64,000 bases of DNA from positions 412,249-476,248 of IMG/VR virus record IMGVR_UViG_3300018080_008436; one strand, 5' to 3'. Positions within the stretch are counted from its first letter, which is position 1; each line of letters opens with the position of its first letter. A program made the translations under genes and the position numbers. The notes under the pieces were generated by a model. The model ran no database searches and was not told the DNA's origin. It worked only from the letters and a program-made list of their open reading frames with translations. This document shows positions 3,136 to 36,063 of this stretch, one piece after another.

Positions 3136-3721
3136 AGTCGCTTCATACGTTGAGGCATTAAATGTAGCCAATATGGATGGCGAGATAAAGAAACCAGAAG
3201 TGCTTGGAGTTTTGCAATCTCTTCCATCCCCAAATCACATCAAAAGATACTTATCAAATGAAGAAGCAAGAGTCTTGTTTGAAAGCATCCGATGGATTTG
3301 GAAAGAAACAAGTGGTAAAGATATTAGTGAGACATTTAATTTCGAGCCTGCTCCAGAATCATTGCTAGGAAATTACTGGATGCTAAGGAATGGTCTGATC
3401 TTTCATGGTATCAACCATTATGGCATCATTAAAAGAAATATGACGCTCTTTTCTAACGTCCTGAAGTTAGAGCCGTTTGTACTGCATCAGAAGCTTGCAG
3501 GCATACCACAAGACCTAATTAAGTACGTTATAGACAATGGGGGGATGAGAATCTTCGTTACGGCTGACAAAAGAGCATATTTCCAAATGAATGATCAGGT
3601 TTATGCCAATTGGGGTAGGGCCAAAGTTAAAGGACTGGACTTCGGAAACAAAGTGGTCAAACTTGTTGACCCCACTACCCGATTTGACGGTTGGAACTCT
3701 GGAATTACCTTAAAACTCTAG
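3113..3721 (+). CDS. hypothetical protein
   Basis: 202-aa ORF overlapping the cca stop. Confidence 0.7.
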   Translation: MEDVTANEVASYVEALNVANMDGEIKKPEVLGVLQSLPSPNHIKRYLSNEEARVLFESIRWIWKETSGKDISETFNFEPAPESLLGNYWMLRNGLIFHGINHYGIIKRNMTLFSNVLKLEPFVLHQKLAGIPQDLIKYVIDNGGMRIFVTADKRAYFQMNDQVYANWGRAKVKGLDFGNKVVKLVDPTTRFDGWNSGITLKL

Positions 3722-5475
3722 TTCATAAAGAACGGGTCATCATCATCGTCGTCGTCATCAAATTCTACAGGTGGCAGATCTTCCTCAGGATGTTTTCTCT
3801 TAGGTGGCAATGGTTCGTCTTTCGTTGAAGGGCCAAACAATGATGCAAGTTCTGCTTCAAAATCTACATCATCCCATATCAACTCATCAAGATCTTCTTC
3901 TGCACCAGGAGAAAGTGGGTCTGATGGATCAACTTCTGCACCATCGATAGCATCTCCAGTACCTTCATCAATGTCACCAGCATCTTTGTCTTCTTCATCT
4001 GTTTCGGTTTCCCAGAAACCAGTTTCATCCAACTGATCTTTGAATCGATTCAGAATTTCTTTCGCTTCTTCTTGATCACTAATAATATAACTTGATGCTT
4101 CGAAAAGCTCTTGTACTGGTCCAGCACCCATATATCCAACCAATCCTAATCCAACGATATCTTCTGGTTTACATTGCATGAATCTTCTGAAGTTCTCAGG
4201 ACCAATCTGCATTTGCATTTGCTCATTTACCAATTCATCTGATTCTTTTAGAATGGCAATCGCCTCTTCCATCTCCAAAGGACGTTGTCCTCTGCTTGCT
4301 CTAGACTCATTGTCCAATTGGTGATCAGTTGCTTTTGAGAAAATACCCTTGGTAAGTTCCTGACAAATAATAATAAAGTTCATACCTTGAGCTACAGTGT
4401 TACCTTCATCATCATTATGACTCCAACCAGTTCCTTTTTGGCCTAACTGATCAGCCATCATCCTAACCATCTCTGGATCGATGTAATAAAAATGCTGACA
4501 CATCAAATTAGAGAACTTTTCATAAAGTCCTAAGAGTTGAGGATTAATGTCATTGATCGCACCTTGGACTTCTTCCATCTCAGTTACATCAAATAATTCA
4601 TTAAGTCCTGCGCCTTGAGCCAATGAATTCATGATGATGCGTTTGTTAATTTCACCTTCAAGTTCTGGAGTTATTTCAATATCTACTTCTGGGAAGTCTT
4701 CTTCACCTGAAGGACCCATCTCTTCCATATATTTGATTTCTAACTCATCCCTATCAACATTCCATTTACGAGAGATAACGTCTTTTGCGAGGTCCATCAA
4801 CTGCTCTTCATTTCCTTGTTCCAAAGCTTGGATTTCTCTAAGGAGTCCAAGAATCTGCATCATAACTTGTTGAATGTTAGTGTTTACAGGGATATCCTTC
4901 TCTTCTGCAATATTCGTAATATATTCATAGTTTGCGCGAGCTAGTTCATCACCATAATGAGAAAGCACTGGATTTTGAGAAAGGATATTGTTTTGAGGAA
5001 TATCTTGCCAGAAATTTCTTACACCTCTTTGTACTGAGGCATCGTAATCAGCGGCGGCGACCTTCTGTTCAAGAAGACGGATTTCGTAACCACTTATCTT
5101 TTTTTTTAACTCCGAAGTAATGGTCGGCAAGTTATCAGGGGATACTTGTGCGGCCAATGGAAGATCTTCTTCTGGTTCTTCAGCTTTAGGTTTTGGTTGT
5201 ACGATAGGTTTAGGATTACGTGGTCTTCTTTTCCCAGGTTTTCCAGGCTTAGTCTTTTCTCCTGGTGTAGTTCTGGGTTTGGTTGTTGGAGCGGCTGGAG
5301 CAGGTCCTGATCTTTCGGTTGATGGAGCAGGTTCAGCTTCTCTTACCATATCTTCTGCTTGAACAACTAAATTGCCATCTTCGTCTAGCCATCCAGCTTT
5401 TTTACCAAATTCTTCCCAATCTTTTTGAGACAATTTAACGGTCTTTTTGCCATTGGCGTTTTTTATAATTTTCAT
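3718..5475 (-). CDS. acidic hypothetical protein with shared N-terminal leader module; candidate internal virion protein
   Basis: 585 aa; begins MKIIKNANGKKTVKLSQKDWEEFGKKAGWL; AGG-N19-GAA motif upstream. Confidence 0.75.
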   Translation of the reverse strand: MKIIKNANGKKTVKLSQKDWEEFGKKAGWLDEDGNLVVQAEDMVREAEPAPSTERSGPAPAAPTTKPRTTPGEKTKPGKPGKRRPRNPKPIVQPKPKAEEPEEDLPLAAQVSPDNLPTITSELKKKISGYEIRLLEQKVAAADYDASVQRGVRNFWQDIPQNNILSQNPVLSHYGDELARANYEYITNIAEEKDIPVNTNIQQVMMQILGLLREIQALEQGNEEQLMDLAKDVISRKWNVDRDELEIKYMEEMGPSGEEDFPEVDIEITPELEGEINKRIIMNSLAQGAGLNELFDVTEMEEVQGAINDINPQLLGLYEKFSNLMCQHFYYIDPEMVRMMADQLGQKGTGWSHNDDEGNTVAQGMNFIIICQELTKGIFSKATDHQLDNESRASRGQRPLEMEEAIAILKESDELVNEQMQMQIGPENFRRFMQCKPEDIVGLGLVGYMGAGPVQELFEASSYIISDQEEAKEILNRFKDQLDETGFWETETDEEDKDAGDIDEGTGDAIDGAEVDPSDPLSPGAEEDLDELIWDDVDFEAELASLFGPSTKDEPLPPKRKHPEEDLPPVEFDDDDDDDDPFFMN

Positions 5476-5511
5476 AATATCAATATCCTCTAAAAACTAA
5501 TTGATGTTTAA

Positions 5512-5536
5512 TTCCAATTAAGGTAGTAATAATCCT
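5512..5536 (-). promoter_or_regulatory. AGG-N19-GAA putative phage late promoter
   Basis: AGG attattactaccttaattg GAATTA on the minus strand; same spacing recurs at 16 other sites. Confidence 0.7.
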
Positions 5537-5537
5537 T

Positions 5538-6488
5538 TTATGGATTTACTTCTAGCCCCATTCTTGCATATTCTTCTAGATTTATCGCTGGATTTGAGGC
5601 TTTGACTTTTACAAAAGTCGAATGGTCACATTCTTTCCACAAATCTTCTCTATCCTCTCCCCCTTCAAAGATTATCATATCATAATCTATGTGTGCGGGA
5701 GTCATCCACTCTCCATTATGCCAAATCTGGAAATCCACATCTGCATCTCTATATTGGTTCAACTTGTTGATATGGACTTCTGCATAAAGGAAATCTGGTG
5801 GTTTTTCAATTTTTAATGTATATTTATTATAGCCTGCTGGGACTATCCAAGGGTTTTGGAAAACAAAATACAAATCTTTTGAAACTTTTAACAAATCACC
5901 TCTTTGTTGAACCCAATTCCCCTTTTCATACCAATTCTTATTTTGAGAGAATGAAACAATTCCCCTTCTAACAACATTTTGCTTATCCTTATATGTCCCA
6001 TAATATCCTGATTTAGCAATGGGACTGTAAAAAGTCAGATGACTTCCATCGGCCTCCACTTGTCTTCGAGCGTTATTAAAGGCTCTAACTTCTTCATCTT
6101 CCTCTTCTTCAATAGGATCAGCTTCTTGAGGAGCGTTCGGATCAGCTTCTTGAGGAGCGTTCGGATCAGCTTCTTGAGGAGCGTTCGGATCTATCCCTGC
6201 CAGAAGTTGAGCATTTCGTTCTCTCTCCAATAATTCAAAAAGATCATCTGGTTCATCTATGTCTGGAATTTTCATTTTTCCATCTTTCAACGCATCGTCT
6301 ATTTGTTCTGGAGTTAGAGGTTTTTTATAACCTTTTATCTTCCCTTGTTTATCAAGTACTGGTTGCCTTTCTTCTTGCGTCCAGCCTATTTCTTTTAGCC
6401 TATTCTGATATTCTTTACATTCTATATAGTCTGCTCTTTGAGCCTCTTTAAGAAAAGAATAAAATTCAAATTGCTTGTACCAACTCAT
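5538..6488 (-). CDS. hypothetical protein with WY-type leader (MSWYKQ...LKEAQ) and DPNAPQEA repeats
   Basis: 316-aa ORF with AGGAGA SD. Confidence 0.75.
   Translation of the reverse strand: MSWYKQFEFYSFLKEAQRADYIECKEYQNRLKEIGWTQEERQPVLDKQGKIKGYKKPLTPEQIDDALKDGKMKIPDIDEPDDLFELLERERNAQLLAGIDPNAPQEADPNAPQEADPNAPQEADPIEEEEDEEVRAFNNARRQVEADGSHLTFYSPIAKSGYYGTYKDKQNVVRRGIVSFSQNKNWYEKGNWVQQRGDLLKVSKDLYFVFQNPWIVPAGYNKYTLKIEKPPDFLYAEVHINKLNQYRDADVDFQIWHNGEWMTPAHIDYDMIIFEGGEDREDLWKECDHSTFVKVKASNPAINLEEYARMGLEVNP
6115..6191. repeat. 3 x 24-bp perfect coding tandem repeat (DPNAPQEA)
   Basis: ggatcagcttcttgaggagcgttc x3. Confidence 0.9.
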
Positions 6489-6504
6489 AGAATCTCCTAA
6501 AAAC

Positions 6505-6912
6505 TTATAACATCATTAAATCACTAAAATCTGTATCTTCTCTTTCAGGTGGGTTACAAAGTTCCTCAAGCTGTTCTACAGAAAGGCTTGGCTTAATATT
6601 GTCAAGTCCTCTGAACTCAACAACTTGATCGGTCCCCTTGTTTTTAAGAACTATGGCGTAAAGATCTCCACTAATGAAGTAAACGGATATATCATTTCTA
6701 GCAAGATATTCTCTGGCATAAGATTCTGACTGGACACTCCAACCACCTTCTTGACCCAGTTCCATTAGTCTTTTTACACCTGTAACATCTTCTTTCGTAA
6801 AATTGAAGTTTCTGTTTGCAGTTTTTAGCCAACCAGATTTCTGACCCATGACCAACCACTCTTTTTTAGACATTTGAACTGTTGTCTTTCCAGCTTTTCT
6901 AACTAGTTTCAT
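6505..6912 (-). CDS. hypothetical protein with shared N-terminal leader module
   Basis: MKLVRKAGKTTVQMSKKEWLVMGQKSGWLKTA. Confidence 0.75.
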   Translation of the reverse strand: MKLVRKAGKTTVQMSKKEWLVMGQKSGWLKTANRNFNFTKEDVTGVKRLMELGQEGGWSVQSESYAREYLARNDISVYFISGDLYAIVLKNKGTDQVVEFRGLDNIKPSLSVEQLEELCNPPEREDTDFSDLMML

Positions 6913-6915
6913 TAT

Positions 6916-7197
6916 TTACTCCTCAACATTAGCAACATCTTTTTCAGATGGTGCTTGGCCATGTTCCAGATGCATTTTCATTGCATCACGTAGCTTGAAT
7001 TTATCTGTATATCTAACAGTAATTACTCCACCTGGATAAATGAGGTCCCAGCAGATTTCACCATCACAATCTTTATTCCTAATCATCCCTCCAGCATCAC
7101 GCCATCTGTCGATTAGTTCTTCCATTTCTCTTCTAAAAACAAAGACATCATTCTCTCTTTGTAAAAATGGCATCGCTATTTTAATAATCTTCATCAA
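6916..7197 (-). CDS. hypothetical protein with MKIIKIA leader
   Basis: 93-aa ORF; promoter motif at 7230-7254. Confidence 0.65.
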   Translation of the reverse strand: MMKIIKIAMPFLQRENDVFVFRREMEELIDRWRDAGGMIRNKDCDGEICWDLIYPGGVITVRYTDKFKLRDAMKMHLEHGQAPSEKDVANVEE

Positions 7198-7229
7198 ATA
7201 TCCCCAAATGAATTGCTTATTCTAATTTA

Positions 7230-7254
7230 TTCTTCAATATCAACCATCTAACCT
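7230..7254 (-). promoter_or_regulatory. AGG-N19-GAA putative late promoter
   Basis: AGG ttagatggttgatattgaa GAATAA. Confidence 0.65.
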
Positions 7255-7371: not shown

Positions 7372-7947
7372 TTATTTATTCTCGCAGACATCTATTAACT
7401 CATAGATTAAATCTTTTTGATCATCTGTGAATTTCCATCGGACATTAACATTTTTGTCTGCCCAGTCTTTTGCGCTATTACCTTTCTCTTGCCCCATACT
7501 GACCCAATCAGCCACCATTTCAGCTATGTCAATGTCCCCCATCTTAGTGCCATCAATCATTTTTTCGGGTGGTTTGTCTCTATCATTTCTGTTGATGAGA
7601 TCGACCGTTTCAGATGAATGAAACTCTGGATGATGCCTATTACTTTTTACATGATGCTCAGTAGCTTTATTCATCTTTTCATCCATCCCATCTGGCGGTT
7701 CCCAGTCTACACCATCATCTTTGCATTTATAACTCCATGTTACATAAAGATATGGTTCATACTCTGGATCTTCAAATTTACTATCGTCATGATGACTGGC
7801 CTGTTCGATAAGGTCTTCGAATTTGTCATCGTAGTCAGCAATCTTTTTGCAGTATTTCTGAACTCGCTTGATATGTTCTCTAGTTCTTTTTTCAAAGAAC
7901 TCTTCTATTTCTTTCTTCTCACTTTTCGCTGTCCTGATTAATTTCAT
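7372..7947 (-). CDS. HD-like phosphohydrolase (DUF5662-like) with MKLIRTA leader
   Basis: RTREHI..V, HHDDSKF, HHVKSNRHHPEFH and EMVADW motifs; start 7947 after GGAGG. Confidence 0.65.
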   Translation of the reverse strand: MKLIRTAKSEKKEIEEFFEKRTREHIKRVQKYCKKIADYDDKFEDLIEQASHHDDSKFEDPEYEPYLYVTWSYKCKDDGVDWEPPDGMDEKMNKATEHHVKSNRHHPEFHSSETVDLINRNDRDKPPEKMIDGTKMGDIDIAEMVADWVSMGQEKGNSAKDWADKNVNVRWKFTDDQKDLIYELIDVCENK

Positions 7948-8795: not shown

Positions 8796-9212
8796 TTAAC
8801 ATTCGTATGATGTCCTCTTTTCATACTCTGGGCTTCTAGAATAGCTCGTTATAAATACATCAGGGTAATTAGCACCGAATTGATCTGCCGTAATGTCAAT
8901 TATTACCTTATTGTTTAATTCAACCCAGCAATGGTAACTCTTCATACAGTTCCCGCAAACTTTTTTGGCATCGAACCCTCTTTTATTAAGTTCTGCGCAC
9001 AATTCTTCGCTCATCATTTCACAGAATGGAGGAGATAGGAATTTTCCCCCGCTAAGAATTTCGTCTAACCGTTCTCTTTTTTCATCATCGTTGTCATAAT
9101 CTTCATTAACTTCTTCAAGTAGCTCTGAAACATATTCATCCATCATTCTTTCTCTGATCTCTGAAGCGATCTCAAAAATAATCCCCATTCTTGCTACTTT
9201 AATGATTTTCAT
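8796..9212 (-). CDS. transglutaminase/papain-fold-like protein (DITADQF family) with MKIIKVA leader
   Basis: FCEMMS...YHCWVEL...IIDITADQF; start reassigned to 9212. Confidence 0.6.
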   Translation of the reverse strand: MKIIKVARMGIIFEIASEIRERMMDEYVSELLEEVNEDYDNDDEKRERLDEILSGGKFLSPPFCEMMSEELCAELNKRGFDAKKVCGNCMKSYHCWVELNNKVIIDITADQFGANYPDVFITSYSRSPEYEKRTSYEC

Positions 9213-9213
9213 A

Positions 9214-9495
9214 TTAACCAAGAGTATCTTGAACTCTGTCCTCTCGTAACCAAAATTCTCCACTTCCACCAACAGGTTTCAATTTATATTGTGTCCTGCC
9301 GAACATTTTACGTTTACTAAGAACTTCAACAGGAAAGAAAACAGAAGTTGACCCTCTTCCAATTTCATAAAACTGAGCATATTTTATTTGTCCAACTTCG
9401 CTCTCATCCAGTTCCATCTCTTCTGGCACTTTTCTTTCTGGCTCTTCCTTCTGTGGCATAGGAGGAATTACTTGAGCCGCCTTCATTATTTTCAT
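9214..9495 (-). CDS. hypothetical protein with MKIMKAAQ leader
   Basis: 93-aa ORF coupled to its neighbours. Confidence 0.65.
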   Translation of the reverse strand: MKIMKAAQVIPPMPQKEEPERKVPEEMELDESEVGQIKYAQFYEIGRGSTSVFFPVEVLSKRKMFGRTQYKLKPVGGSGEFWLREDRVQDTLG

Positions 9496-10919: not shown

Positions 10920-11318
10920 TTAGCTGTCTTGAATTCCTTCTCTTGCTTTTTGGAGTTTGTCCATTAGCATTTGGTGTTCTTCAGGAGTAGGTTCCTCTGG
11001 AACTATGTCTTCCATTTCGTCATGCTCAAACAAATCCCAAAGCCCTTGCCTTTTTAATTGCTCTTCTATTATAGCCGCACGGAATTTATTGCATTTACCT
11101 TCGAAATAATCATCTACTTCAGCCAAATCAAGTGGTTGGTTTATAGCATCTTGGAAAATTTTTCTGAACCTGGCTAATACAGCTTCTGTACCTCCATCCC
11201 AATCTCCTTCCAAATCGTTTGCTTTTTTCATCCACCCAGCCTTCTTCCCCATATCAGTCCACTCTTTGCGAGTCATCTTAATCCTAGTTTTTCCACCAGC
11301 AGTTTTAACTATTTTCAT
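10920..11318 (-). CDS. hypothetical protein with shared N-terminal leader module
   Basis: MKIVKTAGGKTRIKMTRKEWTDMGKKAGWMKKA; AGG-N18-GAATAA at 11354-11377. Confidence 0.75.
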   Translation of the reverse strand: MKIVKTAGGKTRIKMTRKEWTDMGKKAGWMKKANDLEGDWDGGTEAVLARFRKIFQDAINQPLDLAEVDDYFEGKCNKFRAAIIEEQLKRQGLWDLFEHDEMEDIVPEEPTPEEHQMLMDKLQKAREGIQDS

Positions 11319-11397
11319 TTTAATCTCTCCATTAAGGTCTTAATTCTAATTTATTCAAAATCTTTTCTTTTGATCCTTTAATCAGCAGTAATTGTTA

Positions 11398-11925
11398 TTA
11401 AGCCTTTGCCCAAGCCAAGCCTACCCCATTTACACCTAAAGCATTTTTACATGCTTCTATCGTTGTACCTTTAGTTATTACATTATCAACAAAATAAACA
11501 TTCTTGTTGTCTAAATCCATAACGTCTGCATCATCTCTGACAATCATATTGTGCTCTTCAACCGTGTAATTAGGAAGATTTTGCTTTCTCCTTTGATGAG
11601 ATGGTTCTATACTAGAAGACCGACCCAATGGATCATATATCTCAGATCCAGTTATTTTAGCAATTGCCTCGCATAAAAGCATGTTTGACCCCCTATCCCC
11701 TGATGATGATGGAACTGGTACTAAGAGGCTATTAGATGCAACATATTTCGCCATAGTATCAGCCGCTATCTTAATGGCATCTGAATTTTTGTTCTTTATT
11801 TCGTAAGATATCTTTCTAACAAAAGCTTCTTGCTGTGATAGTTCTCTTCTTCTAGGAGAAATATATTGATAAATGGCTATATTTTTGCCATCATTTAAAA
11901 ATTGAGCTTTTTTATACCAGTTCAT
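11398..11925 (-). CDS. phosphoribosyltransferase-fold (ComF-like) protein with MNWYKKAQ leader
   Basis: LLVPVPSS and PRPP-binding loop VYFVDNVITKGTT. Confidence 0.75.
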   Translation of the reverse strand: MNWYKKAQFLNDGKNIAIYQYISPRRRELSQQEAFVRKISYEIKNKNSDAIKIAADTMAKYVASNSLLVPVPSSSGDRGSNMLLCEAIAKITGSEIYDPLGRSSSIEPSHQRRKQNLPNYTVEEHNMIVRDDADVMDLDNKNVYFVDNVITKGTTIEACKNALGVNGVGLAWAKA

Positions 11926-13780: not shown

Positions 13781-14014
13781 TTATTCTTTTAGAGACTTTC
13801 TTCTTTGCAATTCTTTTTTCATAGCATCTCTGGTTTTATCTAACTCTTCTAAGTCATATCCCCAATCGATACCATAATTTTCCTGTTCAATAATTTGATT
13901 ATCATAATAAAGCCAAGCCAACTCATTTTCTAATTCTTCTGTTGGAATTTCTTCTATTGGTTCTTTAGATATAATGTATTTATGTTCTTTGTTAGACACT
14001 CTTATTAATTTCAT
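13781..14014 (-). CDS. small hypothetical protein with MKLIRVS leader
   Basis: 77-aa ORF; start overlaps the upstream gene's end. Confidence 0.6.
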   Translation of the reverse strand: MKLIRVSNKEHKYIISKEPIEEIPTEELENELAWLYYDNQIIEQENYGIDWGYDLEELDKTRDAMKKELQRRKSLKE

Positions 14015-14262
14015 AATTTCCCCAATATTTCATCTAATCTTGTTGAAATCTCGACATCTGATAATTGTCTGAATGGAGCCTTAAATACAGTCCCAGACGG
14101 CAATGTAACCTGCACCTTGTCTCCACCTCCCAACACCTCTCTAAACTCATGATAAGTTAATCTATTGGGCTTGGCTCTTAATCCCTTGACATATACGACA
14201 TTGTTGTTTGAGTCTACCCAAACAATCGATGGAATTTTAGAAGATATCTTGATTATTTTCAT
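14011..14262 (-). CDS. small hypothetical protein with MKIIKIS leader
   Basis: 83-aa ORF; AGG-N19-GAATTA at 14272-14296. Confidence 0.6.
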   Translation of the reverse strand: MKIIKISSKIPSIVWVDSNNNVVYVKGLRAKPNRLTYHEFREVLGGGDKVQVTLPSGTVFKAPFRQLSDVEISTRLDEILGKL

Positions 14263-17300: not shown

Positions 17301-17460
17301 CAGCTTTGGTTGATGCTTCTTTAGTTTCTTTCTTCTCTTCTTTTTCTTCGCATTCTTCATCCTCTTCGTCACACTCTTCTTCTCCAGCGACAGCTTGCTT
17401 CAGAGCATTTCTAAGTTCGTCCTTAACGTTAACTTTTGCTACTGTAGAGGCTTCAGCAGT
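14371..17460 (-). CDS. C-terminal scaffold/core part of the prohead protease-scaffold protein (Zn-ribbons, internal repeats); reached by a -1 shift
   Basis: Frame is open 72 codons upstream of the TTG at 17244, up to ~17463, with no ATG/GTG; many CxxC pairs; repeated VEAGVPR...EGADNID units. Confidence 0.7.
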   Translation of the reverse strand, partial: TAEASTVAKVNVKDELRNALKQAVAGEEECDEEDEECEEKEEKKETKEASTKAVVKNEKAKRDAEREEILASLESRKRVQAQEEILNPEKLDGADIVIETDFEELGSQKTSATFKKDIVKFAKGALATENMKLASITNVTIDGNTIQIAVQTDAGEESVEIPIGEEVAPIEEEIVPEGDLVGEGIEDGLDADIEMENLNQVAYNNKKMKRTAQSPMGGGMPGAAGEVAAPGAPEEGLDAPPMGEDPALQALTTGNEDELEDEIPTVGEKQAPWSICPECGSSDVDVTKEDDGGIIGNCQNCGAEYEALIKKEIEFRIIKPTKSVGEEGMEDVEGPEEPEEMPALPVAAQTRIDKDSIVRIAANREAHGDVCPACGNKKCDVIASGDGRTKCECGQCGTSFEKNLIVSSKNPSNGLLRVEWDLSPDNSCPECKEEARKFASKLKVVGMLKTAQANADTFPTANCVERIARTYGGNTVARFGPCKDKPLAECVCKELKRLGFTKVRQMKKLADTLMQVDPMDECIEDQKSKGHDVVQATSICNCIKKKFAKEESDNIYVQAFADEAKEGKIALSQYDLATMNELFIQKEENLAKKAQAILEEVEIGDDLEPLDSVDVEVDEIIEEPEEVAVESVTITGDNLEVVENTGDEALEEDIAEDVAFEAEEVPEGEDMETFDTDALAEALAMNSSRVRRSGAESNIKLAGKPKLIKTIEKDVEAGVPRSKATMMNEGADNIDVPMAKPQVPRSNATMGHEGADNINPPAGLPDVAVDSSYMGIEKATQSDMPAINNEIKGTVIAEAEKNLKEAQRQLALAKKMKEVDTVEGDVEAGVPRADASLGHEGADNIDVKMANPDVPRAKATMGQEGPDNIDVNAPKPDVPIDNAYMGVEKETQSDMPGINDKYLKQVQQKREEQLARIKEARKEEALRTASWLAANNRIASDKSTFDNVVTALAQFEVDKIASVAETMFPVKAVKTASTEQQVKTAGTGLPAIVIQSQPAQEPSFQDKIAGAFTIGSKLLNDNLIDNDQR

Positions 17461-26209: not shown

Positions 26210-27541
26210 TTAGAGTTCATCAATTTCGAATGTGTCTACCTCTTCAACCTCTTGAACATCTTGAACACCCATTTCTTCGCCAACTTCATTTAGACCAATC
26301 TCATCTGCCGCATCCTGAATTGATTCAACTTCACCATTCTCGTCAAGTGCATCAAGGGCTTCAGTAAGATTTGAAATGTCAGTTTTGATAATGACAGTTT
26401 GACCGACCCCTTTCCCAGAAGCAATATCATAATTGCCTTGTGGAGTATTTGGGTCATCTACAAGAATTGTTCCCTGTAAAAGATTGACAGGAACATTCCC
26501 ACCATCTCCCATTGTTTCAGCCGCAAGGTCACTTAACAATCTGTAGGTTGACCTTGAATTTGCTGTTTTGACAGGTTTAACATCAAATGCATAAGCAATT
26601 TGATCATGTTTCTTCACCATCGTATCAGCAAACTTTCCGATCTGTGCTACGTTCGTTATTGAAGTGTCGTAATGCTCAGAGATCAAATCCAACATATTCT
26701 CATATCCGATGCCTGCCGCTTTCATATCCATGTAATCAGTAAAGATGCTATAAACAATATCATCAAACCTATTTACAGGGGTCTTACTAGCTGTTTTAAC
26801 CAATTTATTAAAAGAATTGGCAGTCGTCGTTACTTCAAGATCATAAGTCTCATTGCCTCTGGCCTCTTCCAGTCTTCTTTCAGTTGAATACTGATGAGGT
26901 CTTGGCTTTCTGGTCCTTTCATTCAGACCTAATTCCATTTGGTTTCCGCCATCTCTTGGAGCGTCTGGATTGGCAGGAGTACCAGCAGTAGGGTAAACAT
27001 GGAATCTGTCATTGATATATCCACCAACCCATTGTCCTTCTTCTGTTTTATACTCTCTGTAGAATTTGTCCATGACATACATTCTCCAGATAGCTTCCCC
27101 ACTATAAACACGATCAGGATCAGCGTCAAAAGAAATGGCATCTGGAGCATAATGAGTGAAATCAAAAAACTGATCTCTGTCAACTCTCCAAGGAGTGTCT
27201 TCATTATAAGCATCTACTGCTCTATTCCATTTATTACGCTCTCCTCGCATCCAACCGTTTCTCTGTCTGCTTTGAGCTTTCTTTTCCATATAAACACCTT
27301 TATTTAATGCCTCTGTTAAATTGTGTTTGGACAAAATTTTATACAATACATTAGACGCATCTTCGTCATCATCATTATAGATCGCTGTACAAGCGTCTTT
27401 AATGTCCAACTCATCCTCAATAAAGTCAATGTCAGTAGTTATCTTCACTACCTTCATTAACTCGTTAAATGCATCTCCTAACGTATCTTTATCTCTAATC
27501 CAATCATTAAGATCATTTGGATTTTTGAAAAAATTCGCCAC
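26210..27541 (-). CDS. hypothetical head-associated protein
   Basis: 443 aa; internal MEKKAQ, LVKTAS and VKTAN motifs. Confidence 0.7.
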   Translation of the reverse strand: MANFFKNPNDLNDWIRDKDTLGDAFNELMKVVKITTDIDFIEDELDIKDACTAIYNDDDEDASNVLYKILSKHNLTEALNKGVYMEKKAQSRQRNGWMRGERNKWNRAVDAYNEDTPWRVDRDQFFDFTHYAPDAISFDADPDRVYSGEAIWRMYVMDKFYREYKTEEGQWVGGYINDRFHVYPTAGTPANPDAPRDGGNQMELGLNERTRKPRPHQYSTERRLEEARGNETYDLEVTTTANSFNKLVKTASKTPVNRFDDIVYSIFTDYMDMKAAGIGYENMLDLISEHYDTSITNVAQIGKFADTMVKKHDQIAYAFDVKPVKTANSRSTYRLLSDLAAETMGDGGNVPVNLLQGTILVDDPNTPQGNYDIASGKGVGQTVIIKTDISNLTEALDALDENGEVESIQDAADEIGLNEVGEEMGVQDVQEVEEVDTFEIDEL

Positions 27542-27545: not shown

Positions 27546-28574
27546 TTATCCTAAATGTTTCTTCAACTCTTCAGTGAAGTGGTCACTAACCATTCTAGAA
27601 GGAGCGGCCTTGGTTTCTTCCCAAGTCCTATTTTCAGATTTAGTTTCTCTCTGAATAGAAGCTTTTCTAGTTTCGTTCTGCTGAGCTAAACTCTCACCAG
27701 CAGTTTTCTCAGGAAGATTTTTGAGGTCAGCTTCGCTATAAGCTCCCATGAAGCTACTACTAACTCCAGAGCCAACGTTCCCAACCTCAGTTGGGAAGAC
27801 AACACCTTGAGCCTCAAATCCATCAGCTTGCATTTCAGCGACCTTTTCTTCCTGCCAAGCTTGATGCTCTCTTTCTCTTTTCTTGGATCTTTCAAAATTA
27901 TCAAAGACAAGCTTTTCGCCAGGAGTGAATGTTTCACTTTCTTCAAGCCTTTCAATGGCCCCAGGATCGGCAATAGAATTCTGATTAGGAGCAAGGCTAG
28001 GTTGATTAGCAATTCTGTAATCCTCTCCACCTCTAATAGGACAAATACCTCCAAGCATAGCAACACCTGGAGCATCGCCTAATTTAGCCTCAGGAGCAAC
28101 CTGTTGCCAATTTGCTTCTTTCATGTGGTCCATATTTGTTCTTTCATCGATATGGAACGGATCGCCAAGAACTTCTTTCAGAGCTTCTTCCATTGTGGAA
28201 GTCTGAGGTTCTGCACTGGCAGTCTTAACCATTTGTTCAGATGAAGCCGTTCTCTCTACTACGGATGTAGGATCAATTCCAACAATTCGGTCTGTACCAA
28301 GTCCACATACAGAAGCGAACTCTTTAAGATGACGAACGTCTCTTTCAGACCAAGTTGAGTTATAGTAATAAGGTTGGTTGTTGGACGCACATTTCTCTAT
28401 TTGTTCACATTCTTCGAACAAGCACATCTCATCAACCTTAGAAGCGGCTGTGACATTAAGCCTATCAATGCCAGCTTGAAGCAGTCTTTCATTCTCTTCT
28501 ACTGCTTCTAAGTATGTTCCTGCGGTAACCCAATCAGGGACGTTATGAACATCTTGTGTTCTATTAATTTTCAT
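27546..28574 (-). CDS. hypothetical head-associated protein
   Basis: 342 aa; VERTAS, MVKTAS, EKTAG; tandem AGG-N19-GAA sites upstream. Confidence 0.7.
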   Translation of the reverse strand: MKINRTQDVHNVPDWVTAGTYLEAVEENERLLQAGIDRLNVTAASKVDEMCLFEECEQIEKCASNNQPYYYNSTWSERDVRHLKEFASVCGLGTDRIVGIDPTSVVERTASSEQMVKTASAEPQTSTMEEALKEVLGDPFHIDERTNMDHMKEANWQQVAPEAKLGDAPGVAMLGGICPIRGGEDYRIANQPSLAPNQNSIADPGAIERLEESETFTPGEKLVFDNFERSKKREREHQAWQEEKVAEMQADGFEAQGVVFPTEVGNVGSGVSSSFMGAYSEADLKNLPEKTAGESLAQQNETRKASIQRETKSENRTWEETKAAPSRMVSDHFTEELKKHLG

Positions 28575-28956: not shown

Positions 28957-30981
28957 TTATTCCTCTTGAAATCCTTTGGTCTCTTTGAGCTTCTCAACAT
29001 CCGTGACAGAGTCCTCGAACTCAACCTGGATTTCTTCAGGATCATCCTTGTAATAATCCCTATCGCCAAGTTTAAGCTCTCCAGTCGTTGCTCCCTTGAC
29101 AGAACCTTCGCTGTTCTCAAGAACCTTGACGAATGATTCAGTTGTCCATGGAATACCTCGGTCATCACCGTACTTATTGAAGTAGTAACGATGAGCCGCC
29201 ATTTCAATCATAAGCATCTCAACATCACGAACGGTGAACTTCTTAGTCATTGCCAATTCAGACAACTTTTCGAGATCCAGACCGTTGATTGCTCTCTGGA
29301 AGTCTTCTTGATCCTCAAAACCAATAACATCAACGCCTCGATTGTGCATTCTTCTTGCGCAAGTCTCAAATGTTTCCATCATACTTGCGGAATCGAAGTT
29401 ACCAATGTCAATGGCAAGGTCAGTACGACCAGAACGAAGCAGAGGTCCAGTGAAATTCTCAAGATGGTTCGTAGTCAAAACGAGGAAGATATTTCTTTTA
29501 ACAAAAAGATTCTCTTCCTGATTGTTCTGAAGCCAGTTCATGAACTCACTCTCAACCTGCTTATGAGCTTCATGCATTCCGCCACCTCGATCATTGGTGG
29601 AACCCATAGCTCTGTCATACTCATCAATTCGAATGATAATATGACTGGTTGAAGCGATTTTATCCAAAGACTTTCTCATCTGTTCGGAACCCTGACCAAT
29701 CCACTTTGAATGACATGCATTGATGTTGAAGTCCCAAACATCAATATCAAGCAATCCAGCCAAGTGAACGGGAAATGCAGACTTACCAACACCGCCCTGA
29801 CCATACAGAACAATAACATGAGGCATTCTGGTTCGAAGATCCTCAATGCTTTTATCGAGGACAGACATTTGGTCTCTTGCCTCATTAATCTTCTTGGCTG
29901 ATTTATTCTTGCTCTTCTGATGGATCTCTTTCTTCTCGTCAGAAAGAAGATCAACCTCATCAAAATCACGCATCAACTTCTGAACATCATAGGTGAAGTT
30001 ACTGTTCTTTGGACAGATATAGTCTTCCCAAGGTCTTCCCTGCAACTGAGTCAAACCAAAGCCATCCTTCATCAGGTTCTTATTGATCTTTGTTCTCAGA
30101 AGTCTCAGGGCTTCTCCCATGTCAATGTAGTCCTGACCGTTTGCATCTGTTGTAATCGCCCTTGGAAGGCAATATCCAAGAACATCACAAGCTTCACTGT
30201 AATTCAGACCAGCGAGTTTGCGGATTGTCTGGTTCATCTGAGATTCGGTGATCGAAAGACGAATGTTCTTTGCGCTGTAGCTCTTGACGTAAACATTGAA
30301 AAGGTGTTTAACCTCAAACTCGTCAACAGTACCAATCTCAACAACATCGACTTTAAAAGGGAACTTGAGTGGGACATTCGAAATCAGAACCAAAACACAT
30401 CCAAGACGAACGGTTGGGTTTCTGAATTTATCAAACAGGAACAAAGCTCTGGTGTCTACAACTCCTGGCTCTTCTGGTTTGCAGAAATCAAGGCAGAAAT
30501 CGACATTACTAATCAACAGAATTTTATCTCTGCACCCACCAGCTTCAGACTTTTTGCGAAGATCCTTTCTGGTTACAAGGCCATTCTCTTTTCTCCTGAT
30601 CTCACCAGTTTGTTCATTGATATCTGGCTCAGGATCTCCATTTGGCCCATTCTTGATTTTGTAAGCGCCATAGATCAACTCATCAAAGAAACGAACACTT
30701 GCTCCTTTCCCAGGTCTACCATGCTGTAACTCAACAGCATCAAATTTGGTTGTTCCATTGAAGAGTTGCTCTACACAGAACGTTTTCTTCAGGATGGACT
30801 GAACGAGGTAAGGATTTTCATGATTGACAACGAAATTGACGATACCAGTTATAGAGATGGAGCAAGTAGACTTCATCTCTTTAATTACCTTATTAATACC
30901 TGGGCTGTTTTCCAGCAGGTAAGGCATTCCAGTTTTCTTCTGCTTGTTGTCTTCTGTGGCACTTTTCTTGTCTTCGCTCAT
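28957..30981 (-). CDS. AAA+ ATPase, Ycf46-like
   Basis: Walker A GQGGVGKS, SKWIGQGSE pore loop, Walker B IRIDEYD, sensor TTN, Arg finger LLRSGRTD; degenerate N-terminal AAA domain. Confidence 0.8.
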   Translation of the reverse strand: MSEDKKSATEDNKQKKTGMPYLLENSPGINKVIKEMKSTCSISITGIVNFVVNHENPYLVQSILKKTFCVEQLFNGTTKFDAVELQHGRPGKGASVRFFDELIYGAYKIKNGPNGDPEPDINEQTGEIRRKENGLVTRKDLRKKSEAGGCRDKILLISNVDFCLDFCKPEEPGVVDTRALFLFDKFRNPTVRLGCVLVLISNVPLKFPFKVDVVEIGTVDEFEVKHLFNVYVKSYSAKNIRLSITESQMNQTIRKLAGLNYSEACDVLGYCLPRAITTDANGQDYIDMGEALRLLRTKINKNLMKDGFGLTQLQGRPWEDYICPKNSNFTYDVQKLMRDFDEVDLLSDEKKEIHQKSKNKSAKKINEARDQMSVLDKSIEDLRTRMPHVIVLYGQGGVGKSAFPVHLAGLLDIDVWDFNINACHSKWIGQGSEQMRKSLDKIASTSHIIIRIDEYDRAMGSTNDRGGGMHEAHKQVESEFMNWLQNNQEENLFVKRNIFLVLTTNHLENFTGPLLRSGRTDLAIDIGNFDSASMMETFETCARRMHNRGVDVIGFEDQEDFQRAINGLDLEKLSELAMTKKFTVRDVEMLMIEMAAHRYYFNKYGDDRGIPWTTESFVKVLENSEGSVKGATTGELKLGDRDYYKDDPEEIQVEFEDSVTDVEKLKETKGFQEE

Positions 30982-31116: not shown

Positions 31117-31791
31117 TTATTTTTCGTAATCTTTTACCATTAACTTGACAAAGTCTTTGGGGTATCCAAGCTGTCTTGACCAGTAATCGTAGATCTTCTT
31201 ACGATTCTTTGGACTGATCTCAGCAAGCTTTACCCAATCATCAGCGGAAGCTTCAACAACTTCATCTTCTTCGTCTTCGGCTTCTACCACTTCATCTTCT
31301 TCGGAAGCTTCAACAGTTTCTTCGGAAGCTTCAACAGTTTCGTTTTCATCAGTTGCACATTTTTGAGTTGGACACTCTTCGCCACCTTCGATAACTTCTT
31401 CCTCAACTTCCATTTCGAATTCCTCTACAGGAGCATCTTCAGTTTCTCCACCAAGACACTCAACAGCATCTTCAATGGCATCCTGTGCTCTTTCGAGACA
31501 TTCAACTGCGGCATCTTCGCCTTCAGCTACTTCTTCGACTTGACCTTCGAATTCAACACCGTCAGTTTCAACAGCATCAGTCTCTGCAAGCTCATCGCCA
31601 CCCATAGCCATGCCACAACCTTGTGCGGCTTCTTTTTCTTCGTAATTAGCCACTACTTGTTTTGCGGCTTCGAAAAGATCATCTCTATATTGTTCCTGTT
31701 CGGAAACTTCTCCTTCATTATTTGAAGCGGTTTTCACCATAACTTTGGGAAGCCAATCCGTAGAACCTTTTCCAGAAGGCATAATTCTCAT
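31117..31791 (-). CDS. acidic hypothetical head-associated protein
   Basis: 224 aa; MVKTAS, ETVEASE repeats, WVKLAE; AGG-N19-GAATAA at 31857-31881. Confidence 0.7.
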   Translation of the reverse strand: MRIMPSGKGSTDWLPKVMVKTASNNEGEVSEQEQYRDDLFEAAKQVVANYEEKEAAQGCGMAMGGDELAETDAVETDGVEFEGQVEEVAEGEDAAVECLERAQDAIEDAVECLGGETEDAPVEEFEMEVEEEVIEGGEECPTQKCATDENETVEASEETVEASEEDEVVEAEDEEDEVVEASADDWVKLAEISPKNRKKIYDYWSRQLGYPKDFVKLMVKDYEK

Positions 31792-32057: not shown

Positions 32058-32060
32058 AAT

Positions 32061-32975
32061 TCACCTAATAATGTTTTTTAACCTGTCCCACAAATTTTGT
32101 GGTTCTTCTATTGTTTGTTCTTGTTCTGGAGAGGTTTCTCCTTCATCAACTTTTATTTCTAGACTGATTATGTTATCAATCAAGAAGTTCTTTGGCGTTC
32201 CCCCTTCAATACTCCATCCACTTCCATTAATAGTAGGAGAAGCATCATAAGCCGTAAAATATCTTCCGTTAGGTCCAGACTTAATTGGATACCCTTCACC
32301 TGGAACTGGCATCAATCTTCTTGGTGGTAAAACCCTTCCGCTCAAAGTCCAGTAGACGATATCCATCTCCTGGTTATTTTGTTCTGCATACTTGATCTTA
32401 GCTGTCTGGTTCATGTTGTACTCAACAACTTGATTGGGCTGTGGAGGCTGTTCATACATTTGTTGTTGTTCAGGAGTAACTGGTATTTCTTCCATTGGGG
32501 CTTCTTGAAGAACTTGCTCTTCTTCGGGAGTTAACTCACCCTCTAAATCATTCGGCTCCATCAAAGGATCTTCATTCTCAACATTAACTTGAGCAAATCT
32601 TGAAAGATTCTTGTAAGTAACATTGCTTTTAAGAGTTCTCACCCAATCATCTCCATCAAACATCTGGAAACCAACATCAATATTGTTTTTGGAAAACCAC
32701 CCTTTATTAACTTCAACAGCATATTGGCATGGGCTTGAGGAAGTCGTCATTCTTGTACTCATTGGGGCCATGGATTCTATTTGCATAATCTTTCCACTAT
32801 CATCAAGAAAAGCAATATCCAATGGAATATAGGTGTTCTGCATCCAAAAACTTTGGGGATGCTTTCTAGGAAAGATGAATATCATTCCATCATTTTCCCC
32901 CAGTGTTTTACGATCCATTAAACCATAAGATCGTTTATGGGGAGTATCCGCTATTTCCAAACTCAAATAAGCCAT
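32061..32975 (-). CDS. DUF192 domain fused to a WYL-like domain
   Basis: EIADTP.KRSYGLM.R..L..NDGMIFIF...FWMQNTYIPLDIAF...YAVEVNKG (DUF192); C-terminal MDIVY...RRLMP...YFTAYD...KNFLIDNIISLE (WYL-like). Confidence 0.75.
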   Translation of the reverse strand: MAYLSLEIADTPHKRSYGLMDRKTLGENDGMIFIFPRKHPQSFWMQNTYIPLDIAFLDDSGKIMQIESMAPMSTRMTTSSSPCQYAVEVNKGWFSKNNIDVGFQMFDGDDWVRTLKSNVTYKNLSRFAQVNVENEDPLMEPNDLEGELTPEEEQVLQEAPMEEIPVTPEQQQMYEQPPQPNQVVEYNMNQTAKIKYAEQNNQEMDIVYWTLSGRVLPPRRLMPVPGEGYPIKSGPNGRYFTAYDASPTINGSGWSIEGGTPKNFLIDNIISLEIKVDEGETSPEQEQTIEEPQNLWDRLKNIIR

Positions 32976-33231
32976 ATCTTACCTCTTCATCCCAAGGGAT
33001 TCCGCTTTGATCCAAAGCATCGCAAAGCACTTCGGAAATTTCTCTATCCTCACACTCAAATTGGAGAACCTTAGAACCTGCTTTGTTGGTCATTTCAACT
33101 CCACTAGGAATTTCTAAAGTTGCCAGACCATGAATTAGCATATTGTAATGTCTTCTTGACAATACAGCCCTAATAGCTACTGGTCCGTTTCCTGGTTCGT
33201 GTTTTTTATTCCTGATCAGCATCTTTGACAT
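32935..33231 (-). CDS. hypothetical protein
   Basis: 98-aa ORF overlapping its neighbours in the operon. Confidence 0.55.
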   Translation of the reverse strand: MSKMLIRNKKHEPGNGPVAIRAVLSRRHYNMLIHGLATLEIPSGVEMTNKAGSKVLQFECEDREISEVLCDALDQSGIPWDEEVRYGLFEFGNSGYSP

Positions 33232-33676: not shown

Positions 33677-33678
33677 AA

Positions 33679-36063
33679 TTACTCTCCAAAATCCAATATT
33701 TTATCTAATTCATACTTCTTAAAAAGTTCCTGGGCTTCCTCTTCATTGAGTGACTCTATCTTTGCCTTCGCAAACTGCAAGAAGTCAACAGAATACTTTT
33801 CCAAAAGAACGGGAGCGTATTTTCCAATAGCTTCCTCTAATTCACTATCAATATCAAGACCAAGCTTGATTGACAAATACAACGCTCTCAATATAATGAA
33901 TGGGTTGAATGACAATACATCATCTGCATCCATGACCGTTTCGATATAATTATCTCCATTAAAAGGAGTGATGAACGATCCAGTGTAAGGGTTATATCCT
34001 CTAGCATTAATAGTGAAATCCTTGTTGCAAATATCATGCAATACATGGCTGGAAGAATCAAGATCCTGTTTTTTCATCCATCTCTCGATAGTTGGGATCT
34101 TTTGTCCTCCATTGAAACAAATCTTCACGCCTTTGTGATTAAAACAAAAACATCTAGTTGCTGGATCAATCTCAGAGACCTGTTCTCCCAATTCTTCAGC
34201 CAACAAACTTCCGAATTTATGGCAGTTTTGGGATGAATCACTTGTAAATTCAAGTTCCTCAACTTCTGGAGATCTGTTCCCAAAAGATTTCTCTCTTGCA
34301 TAAGAACCGATAGCATAAACATCTTTGATATCGTATTCATGAGCCACACTCTTTGCGGCATCCATAATGCAACTAATAGCATCTTCAAGCGTTGGTCTGC
34401 AACCAACAACCTTTGACATAATCTCTCTTAGTTGTTCATCATTGTTCTGAATAGCATCTTCGACTTTTTCAATTTCTTCACTACCAACTCCCCTATGAAT
34501 CCAGCAGGAGTATATCTCTTCTCCATCGGACTCTCCCAAAGAAAACATATCGACTCCAATAGGACTGCGCCCCATTGACTTTTCAATAACTGACAACATA
34601 TCTTCACTACAAACAATCCTAGTTGCCTTCATATCGCCCCTAAGAATGATTGATCGTATTTTTCTCAACATATCAACAATATGTCCAAGCCCACCCGAAG
34701 CAAAACGTTTTGCAGGATGAGTGTTGCTTAAGTCTCTTGTTGAATCAAACCAACTCTCTGGTTTGAACCTTGGCTCGATCCATCTGTAATAAAACCCCTT
34801 GATGTCATATGTTGGGTTATATCTAGGTTGTGACTTTATCCAGTCCTCTTCTTCTGAAAAACATTCATCTCTGTCATCCCAGGCCATGACTCTGTCACCT
34901 AACCCAGGAATAGTTGATCCATCAGAAATTTCGAGATTATTGTACCACCCAAAAACTGTCGCCATCTTTGTCATCTTTGATGCTTGCTTTAAAGGCATCA
35001 TCAATGGTTGTGGTCTAGTATCTTCCAGAAGATCTTCAGTGATTCTATATCCAGTATCGTCTTTGAGCCTGTCTTTGTCAAGCAATTCTTCAAAAATGAG
35101 ATCAGGATCTAATTCCCAATCACCTTCAGTAAATTTCCTCAACTGAACTTCATAGATGTCATGTTCTGGAGATAGGTCTGGAGGGAGTGGAGCCTGATAC
35201 TGTCTGCCAAGCATTTCTTCGATTGCTCGATTTTGATATTGATGGGCGATCATACCCCAATCTGGTTGGGCCTGGAAATTTGCTCCATGATCACCATATC
35301 TTCCTGACAAATCAGATCCTGAGGGAGGATAGAATGGAAAGTGGCTTTGAGCTTCTTTATACCAATTATTTGAGGCTCCTTGCCTTAAACTTAGTTCACC
35401 CTCTATGCTGTATTTCTGCTGAATCTCTCTCATGGCAGATTCAAGTAATGCTGTCTCAACTTGAGTTGGACCTGCTTCGTCTTCTGCCCCTTTAGCATGA
35501 GTGGCTTCGTGAGCCATTGTAGCGGCCATGTGAGCTATCATAAGATCTTGTCTTAGCTCTGCATGCATTTCTGGTGGAACGATGTCCTGAAGGTTCCTAA
35601 AGGATTGCTCCATCTCATTACGAGTGTCTGCTACATTCAGTCCTAGAACTGATCCTCCTTTACTTTCTAGATCAGCATATACTTGCTGGATTTCATTACG
35701 GATAGTTTCTTGGTCTTTCTCTTCTTTAGTGTCATACGCTCGAAGCATTCCATCTTCTTCGACAATTTCATAACCTCTTGATTCAAGTCTTTTTTGAAGT
35801 TCTTGGGTTTTGACTGCCCTATCTAGTGACGGAACATAAACTCCATAAACACCAGCTTTCGCGAAGTTGAACATATAAACAATATTCTGCAAAAGATTTG
35901 AGTCGAATCGATTGACTAAGTCAACTGATTTCTGGGCATCGCCAAATTGGGAAGAGATGTTGGAGATGTTAACACTTGGGCTTCCGATCAAACTACCTTT
36001 ATACTCTGGAGCATCACCAGAGTAATACCCTCCGTAGTCTTGAGATACTTTTATGATTTTCAT
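33679..36063 (-). CDS. multidomain protein: MKIIKVSQ leader, HExxH domain and degenerate CCA/poly(A)-polymerase domain
   Basis: MAHEATH; internal NNWYKEAQ; VYAIGSYARE...ELEF...DICNKDFTINA...NPFIILRAL; AGG-N19-GAATAA at 36100-36124. Confidence 0.7.
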   Translation of the reverse strand: MKIIKVSQDYGGYYSGDAPEYKGSLIGSPSVNISNISSQFGDAQKSVDLVNRFDSNLLQNIVYMFNFAKAGVYGVYVPSLDRAVKTQELQKRLESRGYEIVEEDGMLRAYDTKEEKDQETIRNEIQQVYADLESKGGSVLGLNVADTRNEMEQSFRNLQDIVPPEMHAELRQDLMIAHMAATMAHEATHAKGAEDEAGPTQVETALLESAMREIQQKYSIEGELSLRQGASNNWYKEAQSHFPFYPPSGSDLSGRYGDHGANFQAQPDWGMIAHQYQNRAIEEMLGRQYQAPLPPDLSPEHDIYEVQLRKFTEGDWELDPDLIFEELLDKDRLKDDTGYRITEDLLEDTRPQPLMMPLKQASKMTKMATVFGWYNNLEISDGSTIPGLGDRVMAWDDRDECFSEEEDWIKSQPRYNPTYDIKGFYYRWIEPRFKPESWFDSTRDLSNTHPAKRFASGGLGHIVDMLRKIRSIILRGDMKATRIVCSEDMLSVIEKSMGRSPIGVDMFSLGESDGEEIYSCWIHRGVGSEEIEKVEDAIQNNDEQLREIMSKVVGCRPTLEDAISCIMDAAKSVAHEYDIKDVYAIGSYAREKSFGNRSPEVEELEFTSDSSQNCHKFGSLLAEELGEQVSEIDPATRCFCFNHKGVKICFNGGQKIPTIERWMKKQDLDSSSHVLHDICNKDFTINARGYNPYTGSFITPFNGDNYIETVMDADDVLSFNPFIILRALYLSIKLGLDIDSELEEAIGKYAPVLLEKYSVDFLQFAKAKIESLNEEEAQELFKKYELDKILDFGE

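Follow-up and report, generated by a model that had tools for sequence, protein, structure and literature searches.

A seven-residue N-terminal leader on diverse proteins of a phage G-group megaphage shares its core with a motif of head-assembly proteins

Introduction

Why should a series of mostly unrelated genes around a phage capsid gene begin with nearly the same seven residues? The question is raised by a 64,000-nucleotide stretch of the IMG/VR record IMGVR_UViG_3300018080_008436 (positions 412,249 to 476,248), which we call the window and whose own numbering is used below. A preliminary description had listed 11 open reading frames (ORFs) of this window that start with MK[IL][IVM][KR]x[AS], and had proposed that the leader is a portable tag by which varied passengers are packaged and processed in the head, as the capsid targeting sequence (CTS) does for internal proteins of phage T4. 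Three head proteins of the window resemble those of Bacillus phage G:

12036-12899, minus strand: major capsid protein, 287 residues, 55% identical to phage G gp27
17439-19940, minus strand: prohead protease, 43% identical to phage G gp19
23946-26168, minus strand: portal protein, 35% identical to phage G gp14

On these sequence identities the window phage is therefore placed, as an uncultivated megaphage, in the phage G group. To our knowledge, phage G is the sole cultured representative of such megaphages (about 0.5 Mb), and no role is known for most of their genes. Here we report that the core of the leader is also a conserved linear motif within head-assembly proteins, the protease among them. 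We think it on balance probable that the leader is a CTS-like signal for capsid targeting and processing, made of an N-terminal copy of the motif that the prohead protease recognizes.

Results

A leader shared by at least 13 genes

Translation confirmed the leader on all 11 listed ORFs, every one of them on the minus strand. Two further genes carry a second flavour, MxWYK, which brings the total to at least 13 tagged genes in the window:

3718-5475, minus strand: 585 residues; MKIIKNA (nt 5455-5475); behind it a GW module, followed through a Pro/Thr-rich linker by a C-terminal part of unassigned type
5538-6488, minus strand: 316 residues; variant leader MSWYKQF, with an additional FLKEA at residues 12-16
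6505-6912, minus strand: 135 residues; MKLVRKA and a GW module ending in a second motif copy, GWLKTA (residue 28)
6916-7194, minus strand: 92 residues; MKIIKIA
7372-7947, minus strand: DUF5662 protein, 191 residues; MKLIRTA, Pfam domain from residue 16
8796-9212, minus strand: 138 residues; MKIIKVA
9214-9495, minus strand: 93 residues; MKIMKAA
9495-9920, minus strand: rhodanese-domain protein, 141 residues; MKLIKIS, Pfam match from residue 41
10920-11318, minus strand: 132 residues; MKIVKTA and a GW module with GWMKKA at its end
11398-11925, minus strand: 175 residues; MNWYKKA, the second flavour
13781-14014, minus strand: 77 residues; MKLIRVS
14011-14262, minus strand: 83 residues; MKIIKIS
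33679-36063, minus strand: 794 residues; MKIIKVS; NNWYKEA occurs internally at residue 234, and close to the C-terminus there is a weak nucleotidyltransferase (PolyA_pol) match

Against the 11 genes observed to start with MK[IL][IVM][KR]x[AS], 0.0012 are expected from the amino-acid composition of the window and 0.0037 from the N-terminal composition of its untagged genes. When the pattern was relaxed to its core, hydrophobic-hydrophobic-[KR]-x-[ASG] within the first nine residues, it was found in 13 of the 30 genes of the minus-strand block 3718-36063 and in none of the 26 genes elsewhere in the window (Fisher p = 7e-5); residue shuffles yield 0.7. The ribonucleotide reductase (RNR), terminase, ClpP, VWA protein and the AAA and ABC-type ATPases are untagged, as had been claimed.

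The codons differ between copies of the leader (ATT/ATA/ATC, AAA/AAG/AGA/AGG, CTA/TTA/CTC, GCN/TCN), and comparison of the DNA upstream of the tagged genes revealed no conservation. The signal is therefore the peptide and not the DNA, and a conserved 5′ cassette or promoter behind the leader was rejected; judged from the sequences, selection on the leader acts at the protein level. Two elements in the upstream DNA were considered and set aside. A 14-mer, GAATAAATTAGAAT, occurs in two exact copies (7219-7232 and 11343-11356), about 25 nt upstream of the tagged genes starting at 7194 and 11318; counted with mismatches, its total is not above chance. The motif TGTATAAT(A) lies upstream of 7947, 9920, 10709, 12899, 26168 and 38971, that is, of the portal and capsid genes and some tagged genes; it was rejected as a leader-specific signal, being only a generic extended -10 element, and may mark a common promoter class.

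The leaders also differ from export signals, in that no hydrophobic core of at least 10 residues follows the basic N-terminus, as the Sec, Tat and lipoprotein types have; polar or acidic linkers come after them. Searches of PHROGs and Pfam gave no match for most of the tagged proteins. The passengers had been described as otherwise unrelated, which is true of most, but the proteins starting at 5475, 6912 and 11318 have in common an N-terminal module of about 25 residues after the tag, G-K-x-x-x-x-[LM]-[ST]-x-x-[EQ]-W-x-x-[FIM]-G-x-K-[AS]-G-W. This GW module (5385-5475, 6820-6912 and 11225-11318 in the window; L013:7169-7900 and L013:8365-8883 in a related contig) has no Pfam match and frequently terminates in a further copy of W-hydrophobic-K-x-A, as GW-L/M-K-x-A in two of the three window proteins. 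As for assigned domains, Pfam bears out the rhodanese (9920). The protein at 7947, described as HD-like, is DUF5662 in Pfam and has an invariant H...HD...H...HH...D pattern, although its fold match to HD domains is not significant. None of the analyses run backs the papain fold suggested for the protein at 9212.

A lysozyme-domain protein (50268-51044) starts with MINNKNNWYSEA. This is a WY-S-x-A version of the tag with a hydrophobic segment behind it, and the protein may be a lysin that is either tagged or anchored in the membrane.

The leader core recurs inside head-assembly proteins

Head-assembly proteins also contain the leader core, hydrophobic-hydrophobic-[K/R]-x-[A/S], as a conserved linear motif. 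Internal copies of hydrophobic-hydrophobic-K-T-A number seven in the window against 0.31 expected, a count that none of 2000 shuffles reached. Six of the seven are in head-module proteins, and there are none in 9254 residues of other proteins; beyond the N-terminal leaders, the motif in the window is essentially confined to head-module proteins. Outside the protease, the following carry it:

26210-27541, minus strand: portal-adjacent protein, 443 residues; conserved LVKTA followed by S at residues 247-252 (nt 26789-26803)
27546-28574, minus strand: head-module protein, 342 residues; internal MVKTA followed by S, residues 115-119 (nt 28218-28232)
31117-31791, minus strand: acidic scaffold-like protein, 224 residues, with a basic conserved C-terminal tail
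31726-31740, minus strand: its N-terminal motif, MVKTA followed by S, after a conserved N-terminal leader
31222-31236, minus strand: its C-terminal motif, WVKLA, immediately before the conserved basic tail

Both sites of the scaffold-like protein are kept in its family. At the N-terminal site, K is found in 110, T in 89, A in 114 and S in 96 of 118 ungapped sequences (127 full-length relatives); at the C-terminal site, directly before the conserved tail, F is found in 105, K/R in 124 and A/S in 125 of 128. Similarly, in the family of the 443-residue protein the motif forms an island, [ILVM]-[VI]-K-x-[A/S]-S, with K in 87, A/S in 91 and S in 71 of 92 sequences, while the stretch around it is variable. 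The portal and the major capsid protein were scanned as well and contain no copy; the capsid protein also lacks the leader and any delta-like N-terminal domain. Internal Met-Val/Ile-Lys-Thr-Ala-Ser copies as hidden translation starts were rejected, as no ribosome-binding site precedes those at 28232 and 31740 and the ribosome-binding site before 19874 is too near the ATG.

The protease is a polyprotein of the gp21/assemblin fold

The prohead protease itself starts with MLIKVA, as had been reported, and holds further copies of the motif:

17439-19940, minus strand: N-terminal piece of the protease polyprotein, protease domain at about residues 30-230
N-terminus of 17439-19940, minus strand: motif copy 1, MLIKVA
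19860-19874, minus strand: motif copy 2, residues 23-27
19188-19202, minus strand: motif copy 3, residues 247-251, just past the protease domain
14371-17244, minus strand: C-terminal piece of the polyprotein, internal MLKTA at residue 375 (nt 16108-16122)

Close relatives have the protease gene as one ORF of 1800-2000 residues. Its division into 833 and 957 residues here goes back to a one-base length difference near 17457 relative to an otherwise identical 296-kb contig (L047), which has a single protease ORF of 1856 residues; the 476-kb record of the window shows the same split. The break at 17439-17470 may have arisen by misassembly or by true mutation, or may be a programmed shift.

Conservation of the motif copies was followed in 50 homologues (29-85% identity) and 47 IMG/VR loci. 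The N-terminus of the family is conserved as M-hydrophobic-x-K-x-[A/S], a second site (IKTAS, IKVAS and similar) lies 20-45 residues in, and in many homologues a third site comes right after the domain (PGLLKAAS, RMIKTAA). Among 30 sequences of 31-85% identity, neither His94 nor Ser145 varies; Ser145 belongs to an SMG triplet.

Sequence searches of Pfam and PDB with the protease domain gave no match, and its classification is owed to a fold search. An AF2 model built from 30 sequences has a mean pLDDT of 79, with values above 90 over most of residues 40-220; residues 1-29, which hold motif copies 1 and 2, are disordered. The best Foldseek match of this model is T4 gp21 (5jbl; E 7e-4, target-normalised TM 0.61), and the proteases of human cytomegalovirus (HCMV), herpes simplex virus 2 (HSV-2) and pseudorabies virus (PrV) come next, all with probabilities of 0.96-1.00. 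As modelled, the protease has the fold of T4 gp21 and the herpesvirus assemblins. The tie to the capsid protease that the preliminary description had drawn is strengthened in so far as the core is conserved in the protease, scaffold-like and portal-adjacent families and that the model has this fold.

Within the protease domain (19221-19940) there are four Cys residues, of which 155, 158 and 169 are invariant and 223 is nearly so, which suggests a zinc-ribbon insert; no such insert is known to us in gp21 or the assemblins. Directly upstream of the protease, many relatives encode a family of 136-158 residues that starts MIK[ILST][AS]A or xxWLK[TE][SA] and continues KRIKDRxIxW (L062, L064, L069, L072, L088 and L094, at about 5430-5840; L083:4563-5039; L101:1850-2260). 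Its counterpart in the window is the untagged N-terminus of a 1305-residue protein (19942-23859).

The leader as a separable module in the DUF5662 family

The tagged DUF5662 protein offers a view of one passenger across many genomes. Of 120 listed homologues, 59-73% identical to the window protein, 94 have a leader of the form M[KR]I[YIV][KR]x[AS] or M[NST]WYKx[A], and the remainder mostly have degenerate versions. Leaders of the MKII and WYK types swap freely across these homologues, and between the tag and the first conserved motif lie 8 to 18 residues. In the DUF5662 model (pLDDT 92.8) the first five residues, which belong to the tag, fall below 50; a fold search with it returned HD-domain matches only, none of them significant. 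Cultured phages (Lysinibacillus LysYB1, Bacillus SP-15 and Rhizobium phages) have more distant homologues without a tag, which begin with the domain or with other N-termini. The neighbourhoods of the gene in two other contigs (L007 and L015) contain no additional tagged genes, and thus the tag can also move with a single gene. As read from these sequences, the leader is a separable module ahead of a variable linker on unrelated domains. The claim that the tag is portable is well supported by the variable linker, by most DUF5662 homologues and by the many unrelated domains that follow it in related contigs.

Dialects of the leader in related phages

The exact coding pattern for MNWYKKA was found 36 times in 24 IMG/VR contigs (5.7-548 kb, 24-44% G+C). 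In 32 of these occurrences it heads an ORF of at least 50 residues with no stop-free frame extending far upstream; of the others, two are on 11-residue ORFs and two lie deep within longer open frames. Five copies are crowded into one 1.6-kb stretch adjoining a capsid/decoration/protease cluster. The tagged domains in these contigs include ART-PolyVal, an Acb1-like 2H phosphoesterase, an AAA_33 or zeta-like kinase, a UvrD helicase and a nucleotidyltransferase.

Other lineages have their own versions. Phage G uses RL[IK]KK[A/S] on gp17, gp38, gp53 (which has a weak, sub-threshold PARP-type match), gp126, gp141 and others, both near to and far from the head genes; a 398-kb relative of 50% G+C has NRWKxA and RVVKRYA on small genes beside its capsid gene. 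The clustering around the capsid gene that had been emphasized therefore describes the window block 3718-36063, but not phage G and other contigs, in which tagged genes lie elsewhere too. The same protease family is found in cluster C mycobacteriophages and in some Gordonia, Erwinia and Rhizobium phages, and Mycobacterium phage Alice (L127, 30795-55289) shares the order portal, giant protein, protease polyprotein, decoration-like protein and capsid.

Discussion

A candidate capsid-targeting and processing signal

If the leader is a capsid-targeting and processing signal, M-[K/N/S]-hydrophobic-hydrophobic-[K/R]-x-[A/S] would be the motif recognized by this clade's serine protease of gp21/assemblin fold, which is encoded as a long protease-scaffold polyprotein. 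By analogy with the herpesvirus assemblins, which cut after Ala, the enzyme would cut after A/S. A cut behind the protease domain would free the protease from the scaffold part, and a cut before the tail would free the scaffold body from its capsid-binding tail; the motif stands at positions of the protease-release and scaffold-maturation types, and the herpesvirus polyprotein layout would therefore be reproduced. Proteins bearing the leader would be drawn to the protease and scaffold in the procapsid core, trimmed there and retained in the head, as T4 proteins with a CTS are, and may, as a further step, be delivered into the host along with the DNA. More tentatively, we put forward a broader possibility for G-like megaphages in general, a clade that is large and for the most part uncultivated: that they load dozens of enzymes, among them ADP-ribosyltransferases, Acb1-like nucleotide phosphodiesterases, kinases and helicases, by means of one N-terminal label that the protease-scaffold core recognizes; that these enzymes are delivered together with the DNA; and that the dialects of the label (IIKxA, WYKxA, RWKxA, RLIKKA) evolve in concert within each genome.

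Several points weigh against the targeting and processing signal. What comes directly after the N-terminal tags varies (K, N, G, Q, R and others), but at the conserved internal sites the next residue is Ser. It may be, therefore, that the leaders are bound and not cut, and from the sequences cleavage at the N-terminal tags is less certain than at the internal sites. A propeptide of seven residues has no obvious role besides recognition, and a simple cleavage site does not explain the fixed register beside Met1. The third protease site sits in a helix of medium confidence in the model. In phage G and other contigs, tagged genes are found among nucleotide-metabolism genes as well, and one encodes a helicase. 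Nine of the 24 MNWYKKA contigs are among the best 80 of 184 contigs encoding the protease family, a co-occurrence that is confounded by common descent. Conversely, phage Alice has the protease family and no clear N-terminal tag set; it was rejected as a proxy with published data for that reason.

The main rival is that the leader is an uncleaved docking peptide which attaches to the scaffold, the portal or the inner face of the shell, the internal copies in protease and scaffold being shell-binding motifs. The arrangement would resemble that of encapsulin cargo-loading peptides, with an HK97-fold shell of about 290 residues that has no delta domain. We consider this unlikely, though less so than the explanations that follow. 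A short conserved peptide before a variable linker would suit docking, as would a capsid protein of 287 residues without an N-terminal scaffolding domain; the variable residue after the tags fits it too, and the fixed N-terminal register points to recognition of a terminus. What docking does not account for is the conserved Ser after the internal sites, which stand at cut positions of the assemblin type, behind the protease domain and before the tail (PMC4498786).

It is less likely again, and in our judgement improbable, that the leader marks early or accessory proteins for degradation or handling by the phage ClpP (with a ClpX-type partner) or by the AAA ATPase (28957-30981), so that they are removed at a set time and are not packaged. 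N-termini of the form Met-basic-hydrophobic-hydrophobic resemble one reported class of N-terminal ClpX signals, part of the tagged genes lie outside head modules, and both ClpP and an AAA ATPase are encoded in the window, as ClpP and ClpX are in phage G (PMC12484599). A degradation signal, however, does not predict that the core is conserved in protease, scaffold-like and portal-adjacent proteins and depleted elsewhere; nor does it sit well with the conserved small residue at position 7 or with the MxWYK flavour, which has Asn or Ser as its second residue and alternates with MKII within one protein family. Finally, the shared start could reflect optimized translation initiation (A/U-rich codons, Lys second) or common descent of the 5′ ends, and need no trans-acting receptor. 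Many copies do have AAA/ATT-rich codons after the ATG, and in three proteins the homology does extend over a longer N-terminal module. We give this explanation very little credence, as it is already contradicted by the results: codons vary synonymously or conservatively and no upstream DNA is conserved, none of the 26 other window genes carries the leader, Trp-Tyr and Arg-Trp versions occur in relatives of 24-50% G+C, Ala or Ser is kept at position 7, identical motifs lie inside head proteins, and the downstream domains (rhodanese, DUF5662, ADP-ribosyltransferase, Acb1-like, kinase, helicase) are unrelated.

Relation to known systems

The principle that the targeting and processing signal would follow is known already, from the T4 CTS, propeptides of the phiKZ type and assemblin sites. 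In T4, unrelated proteins (IPI-III, Alt) enter the prohead core by virtue of a leader of 10-20 residues, which gp21 afterwards removes (PMC5694885). Here too a short N-terminal leader is common to unrelated proteins, the modelled protease shares the gp21 fold, and the cargo of the clade includes ADP-ribosyltransferases, of which T4 Alt is one. In contrast to T4, the leader has seven residues and no sequence similarity to T4 leaders, the putative cut falls after Ala/Ser with Lys two residues before rather than after Glu, the protease is a polyprotein of 1800-2000 residues rather than small and separate, and the tagged genes are far more numerous (13 in 64 kb). No Glu was found at or beside the ends of the leaders, where the conserved residue is Ala or Ser; with no homology to T4 leaders and no Glu, the system is therefore to be seen as an analogue of that of T4 and not a homologue. 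Giant phages of the phiKZ/SPN3US type package tens of proteins, ejection proteins among them, whose N-terminal propeptides, thought to target them to the prohead, are removed by the gp21-like gp175/gp245 (PMC5694885). Unlike the present leader, those propeptides mostly exceed 100 residues and have no common short consensus, and their cleavage motif ends in Glu; they also belong to another lineage, as the portal and capsid described here group with phage G.

The herpesvirus pUL26/pUL26.5 proteins resemble the polyprotein in having an N-terminal Ser/His protease of the same fold, and would also match the present system in what follows it: a cleavage site, a scaffold and a second site before the tail. 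The PrV assemblin sites are YLQA-T and VQA-S, in the layout protease, release site, scaffold, maturation site and capsid-binding tail (PMC4498786). Cleavage there is after Ala, often before Ser (PMC4498786), and the candidate counterparts are the third protease site, the scaffold C-terminal site and the KTA-S islands. Specific to the present clade are Lys/Arg two residues before Ala and the preceding hydrophobics, and the scaffold-like protein is a separate gene, unlike in herpesviruses. We know of no herpesvirus that equips accessory enzymes with the cleavage site as a portable N-terminal tag.

Encapsulin loading peptides likewise direct various enzymes into an HK97-fold shell by a short conserved peptide with a flexible linker, but they are mostly C-terminal, are not removed by proteolysis and have a different consensus; the peptide described here is N-terminal, and encapsulins have no protease or scaffold that bears the loading motif. 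In staphylococcal phage 80alpha, capsid and scaffold leaders that end in Ala before Ser are cut by the host L27 protease Prp, a cysteine protease, the leader mimicking ribosomal protein L27. There only the capsid and scaffold proteins are tagged and accessory enzymes are not. In the searchable literature, neither the motif strings nor the processing of phage G proteins led to a description of these leaders or of the cleavage specificity of a phage G-type protease. New here are the seven-residue consensus leader, its identity with the putative after-Ala/Ser motif of an assemblin-like polyprotein, its lineage dialects and its breadth across uncultivated megaphages.

Other genes of the window

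28957-30981: AAA ATPase, 674 residues, in the head-gene block, flanked by the portal-side genes and the 794-residue tagged protein
32061-32975: DUF192 protein, in the same interval of the head-gene block
40201-42036: terminase (annotation)
44276-47779: class II RNR containing an intein with a LAGLIDADG homing endonuclease
54370-54942: ClpP (annotation)
58752-61835: 1027-residue protein with a poly-Ser run at its start and a weak match to the BclA C-terminal domain; probably a fibre or hair-like virion appendage

According to the annotation, the window also encodes a VWA protein, a lysozyme, a trypsin-like protease and a CCA-adding enzyme. The portal ends in a DUF559/MTES_1575 endonuclease-like domain (residues about 657-726); portals with a DUF559-type domain, some of them with inteins, are also present in the related contigs L044, L045 and L046. 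Inteins break up protease, portal and helicase genes in related contigs as well.

Significance

Should the leader mark cargo, a single pattern would sort many unassigned megaphage genes as packaged and probably injected, candidate counter-defence enzymes included, and the injected 'effectorome' of such phages would be readable from sequence alone. A seven-residue tag would also become available for loading foreign proteins into very large capsids. For the family of the protease, it would supply the cleavage specificity of a large, unstudied branch of gp21/assemblin enzymes. If that branch shares both the after-Ala specificity and the protease-scaffold layout of the herpesviruses, the finding would bear on the common origin of capsid assembly in tailed phages and herpesviruses.

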